This document shows positions 44,685 through 61,372 of a DNA stretch of 64,000 nt, in pieces (the first letter of the stretch is position 1; each line of letters opens with the position of its first letter). The notes beneath the pieces were generated by a model. The model was not told the origin of the DNA, did no database searches, and worked only from the letters and a program-made list of their open reading frames with translations. The stretch spans positions 62,001 through 126,000 of the forward strand of contig NZ_JMCB01000003.1 in NCBI RefSeq assembly GCF_000737315.1. Direction: 5' to 3'. The position numbers and the translations under genes are program-made. The DNA is from Hyalangium minutum. GTDB taxonomy: Bacteria > Myxococcota > Myxococcia > Myxococcales > Myxococcaceae.

Positions 44685-46517
44685 TCAGGCGATCCGATCC
44701 ACCCTCACATCCACCTCCAGCGTCTCCGGTCCGCCTCCCACGAAGATGGTCCCCGAGGTGGGCGTGGCATCTCCGTAGCCGCGCCCCACTGCGACGCGGA
44801 CGTGCGAGGTCTGCGTCAGGATGCCGTTGGTCGGATCAAAGCCCCGCCAGCCCACCTCGGGCAGGTAGAGCTGCAGCCACGCGTGGGAGGCCTCCGCCTG
44901 CCGTTGGTTCGGATTCTGGGGACCACAGTAGATGTAGCCGCACGTGTAGCGCGCCGGCACGCCCAGCAGCCGCGCCATGCAGATGAACAGGTTGGTGAAG
45001 TCCTGGCAGACGCCGCGCCGGTTCACGTACACGTCGAACGGCGTCGTGTAGATCGTCGTCGAGCCCTGCCGGTACTCGTACTCGCGGAAGATGGACGCGT
45101 TGATGTCGAGCAGCGTGTCCAGCAAGTCGTAGTCGTTCCGCTTCACGAAGCTCATCGCGTACTCGGTGAGCTCCACCAGCTGCGTCTCGGGCAGCTCCTG
45201 GGGCAGCAGGTACGGCTGTAGCACCTGCTGCTGCCAGGGCATCCACACGAGCGGAATGGTGCTGCGCTCCTTGGGCGCCCGGAACTGGAGCGGATCCGTG
45301 TCGTAGAGCTCCACCGTGGAGCGCGCCTCGATGGCCAGCTCCGTGTAGGGCCTCTCGAGGTGCACCCGCGTGGCCCGGTTGCCGAACACGTCCTCGTAGT
45401 CCCGGCGCTTCCCGTCCACGGACAGGTGGAGCTGATGCCCAATCACCGCCTGCAGCTCGTCGTGCATCGGCCGCAGCCGGAACAGGTGGGTGCTTCGCTC
45501 GATGGGGTTCTGGTAGCGGTAGACGGTGCGGTGCACCACGGAGAAGCGCTGCACCTCCGCCTTCGAGGGCAGCCGCAAGTCCCGTTGCCTGGCGGTGAAG
45601 AAGGGCTGCGAAGGCGCCTCCCCGGGAGCCACGGGCGCCGGAGCCGCGGACTGCGTGTCGGGCACCTGCTGCGGAATGGGCTGGACCTGCGCGGGTACCT
45701 GTACCTGGAGCTGGGGCTCGGGCGGCTTCACCTCCGCGGTGACCGTGCCCTGGCGGATGCGCAGGAGCGTCCCCGGCGCGAGCCGCTTCCAGTCCACCTG
45801 GGCGTTCTGCTCGGGCTGGAGCGGGTTGGAGCAGACGAGGACGCCCTTGCGGCTCTTGAGGCCGCGCTTGGTGAGATCCACCAGGATGTCGCCATCACCG
45901 AAGACGAGGCTGTCGTGCGGCGGCTGCAGCGTCCAGATGTACAGCTCGTGCGCTGGATCGCGATCCGCATAGACGCACATGTCGTGTCCATCCGTGAGGA
46001 TGGTGGTGAGCGAGCCGTGCTCGTTGGTCTCGGCGAAGAAGGACCGCAGGGCCTCCAGATCGACGTCCCCCAGGCTGCGCCACCCCTTGTCGGAGATCAT
46101 CGACATGAGCTGGCAGAAGATGAGCTCGGAGTCCGTCGAGCCGATGGGCTCGAAGCGCTGCGGGGTGTTGGCCTCGATGCGGTGGGCCAGGCTGCCCGAG
46201 TGCGCCATCAGCCAGTCGCGCCCGCCCCAGGAGCGCCGGAACGGCTGGGTGTTGCCCGGAGAGATCTGCCCCCAGATCGCCGTGCGGATGTGGAGCACGA
46301 ACAGCGAGGAGGCCAGGTGCTCCCAGGCCTTCACCAGCTCGCTGCGGATAGAGCCAGGCGGGGGCGCTGCTTCCTTGAGCACCTCTGCCGCGAGATCGCC
46401 ACCCGGGTAGTAGCCGATGCCCCATCCATCGGGCGGTTGGCGCTGGGGACTCAGACAACGAAGATCGAAGGAGGGGGCGAGTTCCCCCTCGAAGCTCATG
46501 GCGAGAACGTTGGGCAT
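44685..46517 (-). CDS. Class II glutamine amidotransferase-like (YafJ/Ntn) domain fused to transglutaminase
   Basis: DGWGIGYY, HIRTA, NTQPF, AHSGSL, GSTDSE in the N-domain. C-terminal Bact_transglu_N and core with GVCQDF / SHAW / FDPTN. Confidence 0.88.
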   Translation of the reverse strand: MPNVLAMSFEGELAPSFDLRCLSPQRQPPDGWGIGYYPGGDLAAEVLKEAAPPPGSIRSELVKAWEHLASSLFVLHIRTAIWGQISPGNTQPFRRSWGGRDWLMAHSGSLAHRIEANTPQRFEPIGSTDSELIFCQLMSMISDKGWRSLGDVDLEALRSFFAETNEHGSLTTILTDGHDMCVYADRDPAHELYIWTLQPPHDSLVFGDGDILVDLTKRGLKSRKGVLVCSNPLQPEQNAQVDWKRLAPGTLLRIRQGTVTAEVKPPEPQLQVQVPAQVQPIPQQVPDTQSAAPAPVAPGEAPSQPFFTARQRDLRLPSKAEVQRFSVVHRTVYRYQNPIERSTHLFRLRPMHDELQAVIGHQLHLSVDGKRRDYEDVFGNRATRVHLERPYTELAIEARSTVELYDTDPLQFRAPKERSTIPLVWMPWQQQVLQPYLLPQELPETQLVELTEYAMSFVKRNDYDLLDTLLDINASIFREYEYRQGSTTIYTTPFDVYVNRRGVCQDFTNLFICMARLLGVPARYTCGYIYCGPQNPNQRQAEASHAWLQLYLPEVGWRGFDPTNGILTQTSHVRVAVGRGYGDATPTSGTIFVGGGPETLEVDVRVDRIA

Positions 46518-46621: not shown

Positions 46622-49600
46622 TCAGCCCGGGGTCTCCTCCTCGGCTGGAGGCTTGGGAGGCCGGTAGTCGAGCGGCAGGCGGCGCAGGTCGAGGGTGGTG
46701 GGGTTCTCCGCGCTGGGCTGGGCCGGACGGGCCTTCACCGGCCAGGGCAGGGGAGCCTCGGAGGTGAAGCGCTGCGCGCGGCGGGCGGAGGCCTCGAAGC
46801 GGGTGAGCGGCGGGGTGGAGAAGGCACGGCCCTCGGGGTGCCACACGTGGTAGGCGCAGGCGCCCAGCGAGCGCTGCCCCCACGTGTCGAGCAGATCCAG
46901 CCGGATGGGGTGGTGGATGCCCAGGTGTGCGTGCAGGCTGTGCGGCGGAGCCCACGCGCGGAACCGCACCCCGGCCACCCACTCGTTGGCCTTCGCCGTG
47001 GGCGTGAGCGGCAGCGTGTGCCCGTTGACGAGCAGCAGGTGCCGCTCCGGGATGAGTCCGGAGACGCGCACCTCGATGCGCTCCATGGACGAGTCCACGT
47101 AGCGGGAGGTTCCGCCCCCGCTCAGCTCCTCGCCCAGCACCGGCCAGGGCTCGAGCGCATTGCGCACCTCGATCGTGACATCCCCCAGCTGCATGCGCCC
47201 GGCGAGCGGGCAGCGCAGCTCCAGGAAGGGGGTGTACGCCTCCTGCGGCAGGGGAACGCCCTTGGCCGCGAGGTGGGCGAGCACGTCCTCCAGGTCCCGT
47301 CCCAAGTAGTAGGGCAGCAGGTACTTGTCGTGGAGCGACGTGCCGAAGCGGACCAGCTTCTTCTGGTAGGGCTCCTGGGCGAACGCGGCGAAGAGCGCGC
47401 GCACCAGGATGGCCTGCGCGGACACCATGCGCGCGTGCGGCGGCATCTCGAAGGCGCGCAACTCCACCAGTCCCTGCCGCCCGGTGGCCGTCTGGGGGTC
47501 AAACAGCTTGTCCAGACTCAGCTCCGCCCGGTGGGTGTTGCCCGCCACGTCCACCAGCAGGTTCCGGAAGAGCATGTCCGACAGCCAGGGCGGCGGCGCG
47601 GTGCCAGCGTTGAAGGCCTTGTCGAGCGCGATCTCCAGCTCGTAGAGCGCCTCGTGCCGCGCCTCGTCCACGCGCGGTGCCTGCGAGGTTGGCCCCACGA
47701 ACAGGCCGGTGAAGAGGTACGACAGCGACGGGTGGTGCTGCACGAAGGTGATGAGCGAGGCCAGCAGCTCGGGCCGGGTGAGGAGCGGGCTGGACAGGGC
47801 CGTCGGGCCACCGACCGTGATGTGGTTGCCGCCGCCGCTGCCGGCCATGCGGCCGTCCATCAGGTACTTCTCGCTGTGGAGACCCGCGTGGAGGGCCGCG
47901 TCGAACACCTGGCCCACGAGCTCCGTGTACTCGCGGTTGCTCGACACGGGCGGCAGGTTGACCTCGAGCACGCCCGGGTCCGGCGTCACCGCGAAGCGGT
48001 AGAGCAGCGGCGAGGACGGGGGAGGGTAGCCCTCCAACTGAATGGCGATGCCGGTGTGCTCGCGCGCCTGATCGATGATGGACACGAGATCGAAGAAGTC
48101 CTCGGCCCGGGCCAGCGGCGGCAGGAACACGTGCACCGTTCCACCGCGCGCCTCAAAGGCCAGCGCGGTCCGCACTCGGGGCAGGCGGCTGGCTCGCTCC
48201 TTCGCGATGACCTTGTGCTGCTTGGCCTCCTCGGGGGACGGCTCGCGGCGCGGATCGATGGGCTCATAGGGCTCCTCCCAGAGGTCGGAGAGCGGGTCTC
48301 CCTCCGAGAGCGAGCGCAGCGGCAGCCGCAGGCCGAGCGGGCTGTCACCCGGGAGCAGGAACAGGTGGCGCCGCCGGAACTGCCAGGGGTCGCTGACCCA
48401 GCGCCCGTCCGTGTCTCGCCCGAGGGGCAGCACGAAGCCCACCTCATTGCCGAGCCCCTGGCCCAGAACCTTGGCCAAGCGCCGCCGCTCCTCCGAGTCG
48501 TTGAGGTTGGCCTTGAGCGGATCGACGTCCACCGGCAGGTTCTCCTCGTCCTGCAGGAAGCGCCACGGATCCTCGAAGGCGGGGAGCAGGTGCTGAGCCA
48601 GGCCGAGGCGCGACGCCACCGCCTGCGCGACCTCGCGCGCCTGTGCCGTGCCTGCGTTGTCTCCCGAAGCCAGCGCCTCGCCCGTCCAGAGAGGCTCCCG
48701 GTCGCGCCGTCCGCAGATGTCGAGCGCCCAGCGAGGCAGGCTCTCTCCTGGATAGTGCTTTCCGGCGCGCAGCAGCAGGGCCGCTCCAGGGGAGAGCCGC
48801 CGCCGGAGCTCCTCGGCGAGCTTCACCCCGAGCTTCCACTTGGTCTCGCCCAGCGCGTCGCCGTTCCACTCCGGCAGCTCGGTGTGCTCGCGGGCGTTGA
48901 AGGTGGGCTCGCCGCCGATGGTGAGCTTCACCCCGCGCTCCCTCAGCACCGCGTCCGCGCGATCTCCACCCTCGCAGAGGGCCTGCCACACCTCGTCCGT
49001 GTAGGGCGCCGTCGGCCGAGGCTCGTGCCCGAGCCGGCCCACCGTCATCGAGAACCGCACCTCCTCCGCCTGGGTGTCACTGGTGCCCTCGATGGGGGCT
49101 GCCAGCGCCGGTGAGGCCGTCGAGGCGAGCGGGATATGGCCCTCGCCCGTCAGGAGTCCGCTGGTGGCGTCGAGCCCGATCCAACCCGCCCCGGGCAGGA
49201 AGACCTCCGCCCAGGCGTGCAGATCCACCACGTCGCGTCCCACGCCGCGCGGCGCGTTGGGGATCATCCCTTCGTCGGTGAGCTGCACCAAGTAGCCGCT
49301 CACGAAGCGCGCCGCGAGCCCGCGCGAGCGCAGCACCGCGATGAGCAGCATCGCCGAGTCCCGGCAGCTGCCCTTGCCCGCCGCGAGCGTCTCCTCGGGT
49401 GTGTGGATGCCCGCCTCCTCGCGGATGATGTACTGGATGCGCTGGTTCACCTTCTCGTTGAGCTGAATGATGAGCGGGACCGTTGGGCCGGAGCGCGGCA
49501 GCTCGTCGAGGAAGGCCTTGAGGCGCTCGCCGCCTCGCACCGCTGGCTCGTTCACGTCGAGGAAGGGGAGGAGGTCCTGCTTCAGCTCCGGCGGGTAGGC

Positions 49601-49912
49601 GAAGGGGACGACCTCGCAGCGGTCGTCGAGGAGGAAGTCGAACGGGTTCACCGGCCGCACGTCGACGGCCAACTCCACCGTTACCTCGAGGTGCGGGACG
49701 CGCACGCCTTCGGGGAAGGTGACGCGGGCGACGCGGTTGCCATACGGATCCTGCTGCCAGCGTACCTGCGCGGTGGAGGGCTCGACGGTGAGGCCGTAGC
49801 TCTCGATGGCGGCACGGGCGTGAAGCGCCGGGCGCAGGCGGATGAGGTGCGGGCCGAGGGCCGCAGGCTTCGGGTAGCGGTACAGGTTGCGATGCTGAAT
49901 GAGCAGCCGCAC
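46622..49912 (-). CDS. Transglutaminase + DUF2126 (putative COOH-NH2 amidoligase) fusion
   Basis: GTG 49912 with GGAGG RBS. GSCRDSA / LHAW / LDATSG triad, LTIGGEPTF, PDPGVLEVN, GGGNHITVGG, LVELRAFEMPP. Confidence 0.92.
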   Translation of the reverse strand: MRLLIQHRNLYRYPKPAALGPHLIRLRPALHARAAIESYGLTVEPSTAQVRWQQDPYGNRVARVTFPEGVRVPHLEVTVELAVDVRPVNPFDFLLDDRCEVVPFAYPPELKQDLLPFLDVNEPAVRGGERLKAFLDELPRSGPTVPLIIQLNEKVNQRIQYIIREEAGIHTPEETLAAGKGSCRDSAMLLIAVLRSRGLAARFVSGYLVQLTDEGMIPNAPRGVGRDVVDLHAWAEVFLPGAGWIGLDATSGLLTGEGHIPLASTASPALAAPIEGTSDTQAEEVRFSMTVGRLGHEPRPTAPYTDEVWQALCEGGDRADAVLRERGVKLTIGGEPTFNAREHTELPEWNGDALGETKWKLGVKLAEELRRRLSPGAALLLRAGKHYPGESLPRWALDICGRRDREPLWTGEALASGDNAGTAQAREVAQAVASRLGLAQHLLPAFEDPWRFLQDEENLPVDVDPLKANLNDSEERRRLAKVLGQGLGNEVGFVLPLGRDTDGRWVSDPWQFRRRHLFLLPGDSPLGLRLPLRSLSEGDPLSDLWEEPYEPIDPRREPSPEEAKQHKVIAKERASRLPRVRTALAFEARGGTVHVFLPPLARAEDFFDLVSIIDQAREHTGIAIQLEGYPPPSSPLLYRFAVTPDPGVLEVNLPPVSSNREYTELVGQVFDAALHAGLHSEKYLMDGRMAGSGGGNHITVGGPTALSSPLLTRPELLASLITFVQHHPSLSYLFTGLFVGPTSQAPRVDEARHEALYELEIALDKAFNAGTAPPPWLSDMLFRNLLVDVAGNTHRAELSLDKLFDPQTATGRQGLVELRAFEMPPHARMVSAQAILVRALFAAFAQEPYQKKLVRFGTSLHDKYLLPYYLGRDLEDVLAHLAAKGVPLPQEAYTPFLELRCPLAGRMQLGDVTIEVRNALEPWPVLGEELSGGGTSRYVDSSMERIEVRVSGLIPERHLLLVNGHTLPLTPTAKANEWVAGVRFRAWAPPHSLHAHLGIHHPIRLDLLDTWGQRSLGACAYHVWHPEGRAFSTPPLTRFEASARRAQRFTSEAPLPWPVKARPAQPSAENPTTLDLRRLPLDYRPPKPPAEEETPG

Positions 49913-49989
49913 GAGGTCCTCCCAAGTGACCTCGCCACGATACCCAAAGCCTGCTGGGGCCGTACGGAGAAGTCGGCCGTCATTCACCG

Positions 49990-50559
49990 TCAGCGTGCGC
50001 GGGAGCGCGAGGGCGGAGCTGGCGGCGGGCTCGAGTCCGCCGTGCTCGTGCTCTTTCCGGAGGCGGCCGGCGCTGCGGAAGCGGGAGTGGAGAGCTGGTT
50101 GGCGGCGCCTCGGGTCACCACGGCCTGCGCGACGATGTTCAGGTGCTGCTGCGCGGCCACGGTGTTCAAGAGCGCGAGGCTGACCGCGTGCGCGGAGGCG
50201 TGGTACACGTGAGAGAGGGCAAGCTCGGGCGCATTCTCCAGCAGCGCCTGCGCGGTCTTCTCGGCCTGGGCCAGCAGGGCCTCGGGCGAGGGCGCGGCCG
50301 GAGAGGCTGTCTCAGCGGAGGCGGCTGTCGGCGCCGCAGGGGTCGTCGCGGGAGCCGAGGCTGCGGCCTCGGCTGCGGGCGGGCGGAAGGCGTTGGGAAT
50401 TCCGGCGAGGGGTGGCGCGGGCACGCTTCCCTTGGAGGCCAACGCGAGGATGCTCTGCTGCTGCTGCTCGAGTACGTGGGTCAAGGCTGTGAGGGCGTGG
50501 GCGCTGGTGTCCACGATCAGGGTCAAGTCCCGGGCAAAGTCTTGGGCCGTCTTCGTCAT
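49990..50559 (-). CDS. RebB-domain (R-body) protein with N-terminal extension and Pro/Ala linker
   Basis: ATG 50559 with AGGAGG RBS. APELALSHVYHASAHAVSLALLNTVAAQQHLNIVAQAVVTRG aligns with the RebB core of the upstream gene. Confidence 0.8.
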   Translation of the reverse strand: MTKTAQDFARDLTLIVDTSAHALTALTHVLEQQQQSILALASKGSVPAPPLAGIPNAFRPPAAEAAASAPATTPAAPTAASAETASPAAPSPEALLAQAEKTAQALLENAPELALSHVYHASAHAVSLALLNTVAAQQHLNIVAQAVVTRGAANQLSTPASAAPAASGKSTSTADSSPPPAPPSRSRAR

Positions 50560-50572
50560 GGTGTGCCTCCTC

Positions 50573-50839
50573 TCACTCGTAGATTTTAACCGTGCCCACT
50601 GCATCCGAGGCCGTATCGATGCTGTAGAGCGTCGCGACGCCCTGGGTAGTGGCGGCCTGTGCGGTCACGTTCGTTTGCTGCTGGTTCTGGGTGGCGTTGT
50701 GGGCCGCGTTGGAGAGCGCCTGCGAGGTCGCCACGAAGAGATTGCCCATCGCGATGGCAGGGGCATCTCCGAGCACTTTCACGTTCGCCTGCGTCACTGC
50801 ATCGGTGATCTGCTCATTGACAGCGGTGGGGTACGCCAT
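50573..50839 (-). CDS. rebB: R-body structural protein RebB family
   Basis: AVNEQITDAVTQANVKVLGDAPAIAMGNLFVATSQALSNAAHNATQNQQQTNVTAQAATTQGVATLY is a canonical RebB signature. Confidence 0.95.
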   Translation of the reverse strand: MAYPTAVNEQITDAVTQANVKVLGDAPAIAMGNLFVATSQALSNAAHNATQNQQQTNVTAQAATTQGVATLYSIDTASDAVGTVKIYE

Positions 50840-50896
50840 GGCTCTGCCTTTCTGAAGGAGGTGACGGGGGCTGAAGCACCCCGCAGTTTGCCACTG

Positions 50897-51808
50897 TTAC
50901 AGGGAGGAAGTGAGCGACAGCAGCTCTGTGCGCAGCCACTGGTTGCGCGGCTCTGAATCCGATTGCCGGTGCCAATAGAGGTGCAGCTCCAGCGGCGGGA
51001 GCGACAGCGGCATTGGCAGGAGGTGGTTGCCCAGCAGGGCGTGCAGCTCCTCCGCGCGGCGCCGCGGCATGGTGAGGAGGAACTTGGAGCCAGCGACCAT
51101 CTGGAACGCCGCCTCGTAGTGCTGGCATCGCACGGTGACGTCGCGCTGGTAGCCCAGGCGGGAGAGGACCAAATCCTCCACGGCCAGCCCCGTGCGCCGA
51201 GAGGACACGGTGACATGCCGCGAAGCCATGTACGCCGCCACGTCCAGCCTGCGCCGGCGTCGGCTCACCACGCAGAAGGTGTCCCGCAGCAGGGTGGTGT
51301 GCCGCAGGTCGGCGCCCGTCTGCTGCTCCACGTCGATGGACAGGTCCACCCGCCCCGAGGCCAGATCCCGCTCCAGCCGAGGCCTATCCAGCCGGACGCT
51401 CGTCACCCTCGCTCCAGGAGCGCTCTGGCGCAGGCGCGCCACCAGGTGCGGGAGGATGGAGGGCTCGAGCACGTCGTTCATGGCTACGGTGAAGGTGCCC
51501 AGGTCGCGGGGAGGATCGAAGCTCCGCGTGCGGTGGATCGCCCGGTCGAACAGCGCGAGGGCCTCGCGAAGCTCCGGCGCCAGCCGCTCCGCGAACGGCG
51601 TGGGTGCCACGCCTCGGCCCTCCCGGACGAAGAGCGGCTCTCCCAGCTGATCCCGAAGCCGGGCGAGTGCATGGCTCACCGCCGATTGGCTGAGGAAGAG
51701 CACCTCCGCGGCCCGCGTGAGGTTCCGCTCCCGGAGGACCACGTCAAAGACGCGGAAGAGGTTGAGGTCCAGCCTCGCCAGCCGGGAAGAGTCATGAACA
51801 GACTTCAT
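50897..51808 (-). CDS. LysR family transcriptional regulator
   Basis: C-terminal part of ORF 50897..53824. DLNLFRVF, NLTRAAEVLFLSQSAVSHALARLR, LFVR. Divergent from the ACAD operon. Confidence 0.95.
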   Translation of the reverse strand: MKSVHDSSRLARLDLNLFRVFDVVLRERNLTRAAEVLFLSQSAVSHALARLRDQLGEPLFVREGRGVAPTPFAERLAPELREALALFDRAIHRTRSFDPPRDLGTFTVAMNDVLEPSILPHLVARLRQSAPGARVTSVRLDRPRLERDLASGRVDLSIDVEQQTGADLRHTTLLRDTFCVVSRRRRRLDVAAYMASRHVTVSSRRTGLAVEDLVLSRLGYQRDVTVRCQHYEAAFQMVAGSKFLLTMPRRRAEELHALLGNHLLPMPLSLPPLELHLYWHRQSDSEPRNQWLRTELLSLTSSL

Positions 51809-58349: not shown

Positions 58350-59689
<1,340 letters not shown>

Positions 59690-59693
<4 letters not shown>

Positions 59694-61372
59694 GCGGCGC
59701 TCTCCAAGGGTAGCCGAAGGCTGAAGCGGCTGCCCTCGGGCAGACGAGTATAGGTGAGGCTGCCGCCGTGAGCCTCCACGGCGGTTCGCGCCATGGGCAG
59801 CCCCAGGCCAATGCCCTTGGCGCGCGCGGTGGCGAAGGGCTCCCACAGGCGCGGCTCCAGCTTCGGATCCACACCGCCCGCGTTGTCCTCCACCAGCAGG
59901 ACGGCCTCGGCGCCCTCGCGAGCGAGGCTCACCTGCACCCAGGGGGCGGGACGCAGGCCCGTGTCCCGGGCCACCGCACCGGCCTCTACCGCGTTGCGTA
60001 AAAGGTTGTCGATGGCGGCCACCAGCAGGGCCGGATCCACGTGCACGGTGAGGCCCTCCGCCATCGTTACGCCGATGCGGACGTCCTCGGCCTCGGGCAG
60101 CAGGCGCAAGGACTGCAAGGCTTCATCCACCAGCAGTCTCAGATCGCAGGGCCGGCGCAGCATGGGCCGAGGCTCGCCGAAGGACAGCAGCGAGCGCGCC
60201 AGGTGGCCCAGCCGCTGCACCTGGGCGCGCAAGGCCGGCAGGGCCACCTCGCCGCTGGAGGAGGCGGGCCGCAGCAGCGAGAGGGCGGCCTGGATGCCAT
60301 TGAGGGCGTTCTTCACCTCGTGGGCGATGAGCTGGCTGGCGGAGCCCAGCGCGGCCATTGTCTCCTGGTGCCGGAGCCGCTCTTCCGCCCGGAGCAGTGA
60401 GCGGTACGAGCGCCGCAGCAGGAAGACGAAGACGATCAGGGTGCTGATCAGCAAGGCGCTGTGCAAGATGAGCTGGCTGAGGAAGCGGTACCTCAGGGGC
60501 GCGACGTTGTGCTCCTCGTTCTCCAGCACGGCCAGCAGCATGCCGCTCACGCCCGCGGGCACGGGCACGGGGGCCGCCGCGCCCAGCATGGCGGTGTCTG
60601 CCAAGGTGATGCGCCCGGGCGCGTGCACCAGGGCGATCAGGTCCGAGGCGAGCTGGGTGGTCCACCGGAGGTTCTGCGGGGGCATGGGCAGCAGGAGCTT
60701 TCCGTTCAGGCTCACCAGCAGCGTGAGATCCGTGCCCTTCGCGCTGACGCCCGGGAGCGGCTTCGCTCCGGCGCGAAGCTCACCCACGAGCATGCCCACC
60801 ACCTGCCGTCCGCCGCGCACCACGGGCACCGCCACCACCAGAGGCCCGTCCTCTCGCTCCAGCAGGTTGATGTCCGAGACCCCCTCCCTCTGCACGCGGC
60901 GGAACCAGGGGCGGGTGGTCACGGGAGATTCGCCCAGCGCCATCGCGGGGGGATCGCTCCACACGCGGCGTCCCGAGGCGCTCAGGAGGACGACGCCCTC
61001 GGAGAAGAGGTGGGTGTGGTGCAGGGCGTTGTCCAGCACGGTGACCTCGGGGCCTGCGGGACCATCCTCGAGGATGAGCTTGGGGTGCTGGGCCAGCCGT
61101 TGGAGCTCGGCCTCGAGCAGCTGGAGGTGCACGCCCAGGGCCTCGGCCTGCACCTGGGCCTGGACGGACAAGTGGGCAAGCGCCTCTTCGCGAGCGTTCT
61201 CCAGCTCCTCCCGGTAGGCGAGCAAGGGGCTGGTCAGCGCCACCAGGCCGAGCAGTGCCAGGCCGAACAGGGCCGAGCGGCCCGCACGCCGCTGCGTCCG
61301 GGCGAAGTCCTGGAGGGCCGGCGCGGAGGGAGGCCCCGGAAGGGAAGGGGGCTGGGGGACGGAGGGCTTCAT
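59690..61372 (-). CDS. Membrane sensor histidine kinase (Cache-like periplasmic domain)
   Basis: Two TMs, AHEVKNALN H-box, NLLRNA, DNAGG, GIGLGL. Confidence 0.92.

Follow-up and report, generated by a model that had tools for sequence, protein, structure and literature searches.

A two-gene Reb-family module with a bipartite partner protein in Hyalangium minutum and other myxobacteria

The reb pair of Hyalangium minutum

The window analysed here is a 64-kb stretch (64,000 nucleotides) of contig JMCB01000003.1 in assembly GCA_000737315.1, which belongs to the myxobacterium Hyalangium minutum DSM 14724T (PMC5441343). Positions 49990-50839 of the window were found to contain exactly two genes, both on the minus strand, both intact and both of the Reb family (Pfam RebB/PF11747, 'killing trait'; cut-off 24 bits), which bears out the original prediction of Reb-family genes at this place. 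No further Reb-like sequence was found in the 64-kb window by tblastn. R-bodies are coiled protein ribbons, insoluble in SDS and urea, that can be seen by microscopy and unroll on a trigger such as low pH. Few protein machines besides them convert a change of pH into a large mechanical stroke, and they have been explored as engineered 'pistons'. The short gene, rebB, is followed by a longer Reb-domain gene, here called gene 2, and an operon of the two is indicated by the 13-nucleotide spacer between them with its GAGGAGG sequence. The coordinates of all features are collected in Table 1.

The product of rebB (RebB88) was found to match the Pfam profile over its whole length (108.7 bits, E=1.5e-31, profile positions 1-68 of 68) and to contain the signature motifs P4, NEQITD, KVLGD, P27 and NAT-QNQQQ, and the canonical RebB of 88 amino acids (aa) that had been predicted is confirmed. 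Prolines flanking (D)QITD, a KxxxD/E motif and a NAV/QQQ helix are diagnostic of the primary Reb proteins (PMC13430693), which contain almost no Cys, Trp or Phe (Dorr et al. 2026, PMC13430693). RebB88 contains no Cys, no Trp and one Phe, and is by its sequence a primary Reb protein as described by Dorr et al. 2026. Its identity to the RebB of Pedobacter, Chitinophagaceae and Xanthomonas was found to be 77-83%, and no signal peptide was seen in it by inspection. The Shine-Dalgarno sequence of rebB, which had been called good, is a merely moderate AAGG located 7 nt before the ATG. A perfect Shine-Dalgarno sequence of the GGAGG type (GAAGGAGG, 50857-50863) was found on the plus strand, which is the wrong strand for rebB, with no plausible plus-strand gene behind it, and it may have been mistaken for the ribosome-binding site of rebB.

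The mechanical open reading frame (ORF) of gene 2 is 204 aa long (50604..49990). Its true start was placed at the ATG at 50559, giving 189 aa, because a GAGGAGG 7 nt upstream, the starts of the orthologues and the NCBI call all match there; every orthologue and the NCBI call start at MTK, and the 204-aa version is an artefact of an in-frame upstream ATG. Gene 2 was found to match Pfam RebB at 34.4 bits (E=2.3e-8) over residues 109-159, and its C-terminal domain was aligned to the short RebBs with an hhalign probability of 97.4% (E=1e-11). It does not contain QITD and retains only ENAPE and NTV-AAQQH, and is therefore not a primary Reb protein. In an hmmsearch of 14 sequences, its Reb domain scored highest with Reb genes located behind a sigma-factor gene, those of Ruegeria (E=5e-17) and Burkholderia (E=3e-12), and it also matched RebD/RebB of Caedibacter; its closest matches are RebD-like Reb proteins.

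The N-terminal helix of gene 2 was found to contain the consensus MTKSAQDFARELTxIVDASAxALTTLNRVLEQQQQSILALA, and of the 31 columns that are invariant in the family alignment, 17 fall within residues 1-44, which are followed by a linker (residues 45-91) of low conservation with frequent insertions and deletions. No Pfam match was found for this helix alone. It weakly resembles the Reb 'QQQ' helix (hhalign probability 25%; also by hmmsearch) and may be a degenerate partial Reb repeat. In most orthologues of the long protein, the disordered and otherwise unconserved tail closes with a conserved basic ...R(A/T)R (49990-50001).

The AlphaFold2 (AF2) model of RebB88 was found to contain a helix at residues 9-23, a break at 24-26 just before P27 and a helix at 27-87, with a mean predicted local distance difference test score (pLDDT) of 72.6. 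The model of gene 2 contained a helix at residues 5-42, followed by disorder at 45-87, helices at 92-109 and 111-156 and a disordered tail; the helices of the Reb domain are broken beside P111, and pLDDT is below 50 at residues 45-87, 158-183 and 187-189. As modelled, RebB88 and the gene 2 domain fit the pattern of small all-alpha-helical Reb proteins with a proline-associated kink, and the helical models agree with published Reb models (PMC13430693). No solved structure related by sequence to RebB88 or gene 2 was found in the PDB.

The two proteins were found to differ widely in their distribution. A word-indexed search of 5.8 billion proteins gave 4022 relatives of RebB88 and 30 of gene 2, and the named relatives of gene 2 were all from Myxococcota (Melittangium boletus, Cystobacter sp., a Myxococcaceae metagenome-assembled genome (MAG) and Archangium violaceum). 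When 1.84 billion cluster representatives were searched exhaustively with a profile, 117 matched the gene 2 family at E<=1e-3, about 15 of them with the full two-part layout and the others aligned to the Reb core alone. The partner protein thus appears to occur almost only in myxobacteria, and the pair defines a lineage-specific Reb subfamily even if no R-body is formed. Two distant two-part relatives, P0269 (197 aa, L088 6001-6594) and P0259 (185 aa, L090 6001-6558), were found without an adjacent short RebB; their hosts have large genomes, and one of the two genes adjoins a non-ribosomal peptide synthetase/polyketide synthase (NRPS/PKS) gene. Because these distant relatives stand alone, the long-protein family may also have a RebB-independent role.

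Table 1. Features of the reb locus and its neighbours in the window
Feature	Position	Strand	Remarks
rebB	50573..50839	-	88 aa, primary Reb; proposed major polymer subunit
Intergenic spacer, 13 nt	50560..50572	-	Holds the GAGGAGG Shine-Dalgarno sequence of gene 2
Gene 2, long bipartite Reb-domain gene	49990..50559	-	189 aa; proposed RebD-like assembly partner or minor subunit
Gene 2 residues 1-44, N-terminal helix	50428..50559	-	Strongly conserved in the alignment
Gene 2 residues 45-91, Pro/Ala-rich linker	50287..50427	-	Variable length; predicted disordered
Gene 2 residues 92-160, Reb domain	50080..50286	-	Without QITD; scores best against RebD-like Reb proteins
Gene 2 residues 161-189 and stop codon, disordered tail	49990..50079	-	Ser/Pro/Ala-rich; conserved basic ...R(A/T)R end
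Conserved leader, 57 nt	50840..50896	-	Accompanies the pair; putative extended -10 promoter and 5' untranslated region
LysR regulator	51808..50897	-	Upstream, same strand as rebB
Transglutaminase-like gene (Bact_transglu_N, Transglut_core, DUF2126)	46622-49912	-	1096 aa; directly downstream of the pair
GATase_4 and transglutaminase gene	44685-46517	-	610 aa

The conserved module and its leader

A short RebB (86-95 aa) closely followed by the long Reb-domain gene was found in seven further settings beyond Hyalangium. The pair was present in Archangium violaceum Cb vi76 with a gap of about 11 nt, and in the complete genome of Melittangium boletus and a Myxococcaceae MAG with a gap of 13 nt each. 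It was also present in contig L087, where gene 2 as called is N-terminally short, in contig L092, where the called genes overlap by 4 nt and lie beside a Cas6/Cas3/DevT/DevR locus, and in two high-GC metagenome contigs of JGI (L093 and L094), which are the only loci found in the JGI scan. A Cas6/Cas3/DevT/DevR locus is typical of myxobacteria. The genes around the pair were found to differ at every locus with flanking genes, L093 and L094 being short contigs. Two further contigs, L082 and L083, are about 95% identical to the window over 11.6 kb and come from the same or a sister species, and they are not independent evidence of synteny. Like the Hyalangium locus, the other myxobacterial loci contained one primary Reb and one diverged Reb-domain gene.

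The DNA similarity between Hyalangium and five differently flanked loci was found to be limited to the leader and the two genes; it starts about 55 nt before the rebB ATG, right after the LysR stop, and ends near the 3' end of gene 2. The leader alignments contained the conserved motif GTGGYAGACT..GCTTCA..CCC..GAAAGGCAGAGACATG, of which the window has a single copy where chance would give 0; of 92 loci compared, the eight of myxobacterial type were the only ones to contain it. The pair with its leader is a self-contained conserved module of several myxobacterial genera. The ribosome-binding region GAAAGGCAGAGAC ahead of the rebB ATG was found to be almost invariant, and a pattern GTGGYAGACT-N(5-9)-GCWTC was present upstream of rebB at 50873-50894 on the minus strand as well as in L026 and L082-L087. 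The conservation of the leader together with GAAAGGCAGAGAC suggests a bound regulator or a structured 5' untranslated region (UTR), and the 5' end of the leader could possibly be an extended -10 promoter (TGnCAAACT, 50884-50892) followed by a 5' UTR.

A sigma-54 promoter in the leader, with TGGCA...TGCTT as the -24/-12 elements, was rejected on its GG-to-GC spacing, which is 13 nt (12 nt in Melittangium) against the strict 10 nt. A consensus scan for sigma-70 promoters and terminators gave nothing useful in this DNA of 68% GC, no Rfam match was found within 49800-51100, and no covarying hairpin was seen by eye in the leader alignment.

No paper linking R-bodies to myxobacteria was found in the searchable literature, and in this respect the statement of the original prediction that R-bodies are not recognised in this group stands; the homologues of Melittangium boletus, Cystobacter sp. 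and the Myxococcaceae MAG are already named 'RebB family R body protein' by NCBI, so that such genes are annotated though not discussed. Myxococcota are not named in the surveys of 2013 and 2026, the latter naming only phyla with at least three reb genes per cluster (PMC13430693), and the 2013 survey does not say, in its text or the supplements consulted, in which of the 'Delta' proteobacteria Reb was present. The two-gene layout, the bipartite partner and the leader that travels with them are, as far as can be found, undescribed. The rhapidosomes once reported from 'myxobacteria' were considered as R-bodies and set aside, being unrelated 30-nm tubes of the present-day Flavobacterium columnare.

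Comparison with known reb systems

The 80 closest RebB loci, one genome per species, were compared, with Reb-domain genes found by hidden Markov model. The complete non-myxobacterial loci (n=75) were found to contain 4-10 Reb genes in 72 cases (median 6) and one Reb gene in three. The usual locus contained several genes of 88-96 aa, one of about 75 aa and one of about 190 aa. The last of these has its Reb domain at the N terminus and a Pro-rich tail behind it, whereas the myxobacterial long protein has the reverse layout of helix, linker, Reb domain and tail, and the two are not close (best BLASTP E=7e-5, in the Reb core only). The RebBs closest to RebB88 (77-85% identity) were found in clusters of Xanthomonas, Stenotrophomonas, Alteromonadales, Vibrionales and Sphingobacteriales, which probably represent the 'group 1 with S1-S3' synteny type of Dorr et al. 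2026. The genes of such multi-gene clusters lie on one strand with short spacers, as in the pair. R-body-producing clusters are marked by at least two primary structural paralogues (RebA and RebB, or RebP1 and RebP2) or, in the 2026 survey, by at least three reb homologues in one cluster, and neither was found at the Hyalangium locus within the 64 kb.

The type-51 locus of Caedibacter taeniospiralis was found to share with the myxobacterial pair the small, helical, Gln-rich and cytoplasmic nature of its proteins, and RebB88 is 50% identical to its RebB, 51% to RebA and 42% to RebD over 59-80 residues. It contains four genes (rebA, rebB, rebC and rebD, on pKAP47/pKAP298) with two major subunits, whereas the pair contains one primary and one bipartite protein, and it is plasmid-borne beside transposases and phage genes, whereas the Hyalangium pair is chromosomal without mobile genes. 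According to a preprint (bioRxiv 10.64898/2026.05.21.725848), RebA and RebB are the bulk subunits. RebD is incorporated as a minor subunit, nucleating the structure and directing it into helical lamellae, whereas RebC assists assembly and is not itself incorporated; rolls form with RebD and RebC alone. The gene table of pKAP298 (L097, PLSDB copy) contained three Reb genes only, of 114, 105 and 81 aa, with no ORF of at least 40 aa between rebB and rebD and two unannotated ORFs after rebD, one of 114 aa across the record origin and one of 95 aa (308-589), among which RebC could not be identified with certainty. The N-terminal helix of gene 2 showed no resemblance to these two ORFs, and a reading of gene 2 as a RebC-RebD fusion is not supported.

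The cluster of Pseudomonas aeruginosa PA14 contains rcgA, fecI2, rebD, rapA, rebP1 and rebP2; the non-canonical RapA co-purifies and co-localises with RebP1/P2, expression is stochastic, and a role against a bacterivorous nematode has been reported (PMC8322103). The clusters of PA14, Burkholderia and Ruegeria adjoin a sigma factor, which in PA14 is the extracytoplasmic function (ECF)-type FecI2 with RcgA. The sole regulator adjacent to the Hyalangium pair was found to be the LysR gene, which is absent from the other myxobacterial loci, and the module brings its own leader. Gene 2 showed no significant similarity to the hypothetical proteins that occupy the place of RapA in the Burkholderia and Ruegeria clusters (E=6.5 and 0.38), which were taken as RapA homologues by gene position only. 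A reading of gene 2 as RapA/S4 or as an S2-type long Reb is likewise not supported.

Proposed function and alternative explanations

The reading considered somewhat probable is that of a self-contained, two-gene reb operon specific to Myxococcota, in which RebB would be the major subunit and the long protein the RebD-like partner of an R-body-type polymer. RebB88 would be an all-helical, Gln/Ala/Thr-rich cytoplasmic subunit that self-assembles into an R-body-type ribbon or roll, and the long protein, made from the same transcript, would serve as an assembly factor or as a minor subunit. Through a C-terminal Reb domain of RebD-like character it would join RebB in the polymer and favour ordered helical lamellae over aggregates, and by analogy with type-51 and PA14 it would act as a RebD-like nucleator, to which the extra helix and the flexible linker would add a second interface.

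A bolder form of this proposal, held tentatively and on balance doubted, is that the pair is the smallest natural R-body, in which one structural Reb and a fused nucleator would build an extendable ribbon serving as an anti-grazer spring in starving cells or myxospores. Expression might, speculatively, be confined to a subpopulation or to cells that are starving or sporulating, for which P. aeruginosa and Rhodospirillum centenum offer parallels, and extension at low pH, if possible, would burst the producer cell and the phagosome of the protist or nematode that had eaten it. Caedibacter kills paramecia, and an anti-grazer defence would, again speculatively, have its precedents in Caedibacter, PA14 and the cysts of R. 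centenum, whose formation raises expression of the reb operon by up to 50-fold (PMC4340629). The predation aid that the original prediction named as another possible role is equally speculative.

Several points were found to weigh against the proposal of an R-body-type operon. No R-body report for any myxobacterium was found in the searchable literature, no locus with two Reb genes was present among the 75 complete non-myxobacterial loci, and no sigma factor or dedicated regulator was found beside the myxobacterial pair. That two genes are possibly too few for assembly is a live concern. The reversible, pH-driven extension of type-51 is described in the preprint as requiring all four Reb proteins, no knockout extending (bioRxiv 10.64898/2026.05.21.725848), and a system with a single primary Reb may yield only a static roll or aggregate. 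The ratio of nonsynonymous to synonymous substitution rates (dN/dS), taken between positions 49990-50839 of the window and L082 1392-2241 (about 95% identical), was 0.31 for rebB and 0.36 for gene 2, whereas it was 0.05-0.09 for LysR, both transglutaminase genes, the aminotransferase and coaD, so the pair changes at the protein level about five times faster than its neighbours. In the draft of Archangium violaceum Cb vi76, gene 2 was found to be frameshifted in the Pro/Ala linker (L026 10297-10760), leaving ORFs of 100 aa and 54 aa, of which NCBI annotates the first only, as a 'hypothetical protein'; the frameshift may come from an error of sequencing within the GC-rich linker, or the gene may truly have been lost (pseudogene).

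Among the rival explanations, the one that survives best is that the pair forms a non-classical helical polymer or inclusion (a static roll, sheet, scaffold or storage body) for cell or spore physiology and not for the killing of eukaryotes. The presence of only one primary Reb agrees with it, as type-51 mutants without RebA or RebB roll and do not extend (bioRxiv 10.64898/2026.05.21.725848), and so do the partner protein's own architecture and the distant bipartite relatives that stand alone with no short RebB beside them. Against it, none of the signature motifs is missing from RebB88, which shares about 80% identity with the RebBs of multi-gene clusters; the same packing geometry is argued from this conservation, and to our knowledge no alternative function has been described for any Reb protein. 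This explanation is viewed as unlikely, while having a real share of the probability.

A recent horizontal arrival into an accessory island of this genome, which the original prediction had proposed, was judged quite improbable. Reb clusters are known to move horizontally (PMC13430693), RebB88 is equally similar to the RebBs of Bacteroidota and Xanthomonadaceae (up to 83%) and to other myxobacterial ones, and the neighbours of the module change from genus to genus. The GC content at third codon positions (GC3) was 0.80 for rebB, about 3 standard deviations under the neighbours, and 0.85 for gene 2, compared with 0.88-0.92 for the neighbours and 0.51 for the rebB of Pedobacter, a carrier of low GC content. 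Against an arrival of this kind, the codon bias is near that of the host, no integrase, transposase, tRNA or other mobile-element gene was found within +-10 kb of the pair, and the flanks are ordinary metabolic genes; the locus does not look like a recently acquired island. RebB was found on megaplasmids and chromids of Azospirillum, Ralstonia, Vibrio and others, none of them myxobacterial; these are large replicons, 17 of the 18 typed being non-mobilizable. It was absent from 50,697 phage records, and only short fragments were found in the viral contigs of IMG/VR. Gene 2 and the leader were found only in loci of myxobacterial type, so any donor would have been another myxobacterium.

A recent import from outside Myxococcota is not supported. 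The identities of the short RebBs were found to be 76-85% across phyla and 84-91% among myxobacteria, a comparison that gives no phylogenetic resolution. Because the short RebBs are so uniform across phyla, vertical descent and transfer are not separable by a tree, and an old transfer of rebB into the lineage may have taken place. That the module loci have the partner gene and the leader in common suggests that the module arose once within Myxococcota and was then relocated or transferred inside that phylum.

Both genes were found to be under purifying selection, and the raised dN/dS could reflect relaxed constraint or diversifying selection. The fast local change is odd, given that RebB is about 80% conserved across phyla. 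Both ORFs were intact in most of the nine distinct loci from several genera, the exceptions being Archangium violaceum and possibly L087. A reading of the pair as what is left of a larger reb cluster in decay, building nothing now, would agree with its two genes against a median of six elsewhere, the fivefold dN/dS, the frameshift in Archangium violaceum Cb vi76 and the rarity of the module in metagenomes (two JGI loci), but is highly unlikely in view of those intact ORFs, a dN/dS far below 1 and the conservation of N-terminal helix, Reb domain and leader while the linker drifts, which is the pattern of working genes.

If the proposed two-gene R-body-type operon is real, a working two-protein system would ease both the study of assembly and engineering, the best-studied system needing four proteins for its stroke. 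It would also add a physical, non-chemical weapon or defence to the myxobacteria, which are known mainly for secreted enzymes and antibiotics, and would open a way to test how fruiting-body formers withstand grazing. Even without R-bodies, the locus indicates that survey cut-offs of at least three genes hide one whole phylum's version of the system.

A histidine kinase with a sigma-54-dependent response regulator (Response_reg and Sigma54_activat) was found about 8 kb from the pair (58350-60839, minus strand). No canonical sigma-54 promoter was found ahead of rebB, and hence no link to this response regulator is proposed. No terminator was predicted between the reb pair and the transglutaminase-like genes, and a cross-linking of the Gln-rich Reb proteins by these transglutaminases was considered; it was rejected on the absence of the adjacency from Archangium, Melittangium, the Myxococcaceae MAG, L087 and L092, and the adjacency in Hyalangium is probably a coincidence. 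The LysR gene was found to be divergent from an operon of acyl-CoA dehydrogenase, SDR, APH and phosphatase genes, and the transglutaminase-like genes are followed by DUF1801, aminotransferase, coaD and rsmD genes.

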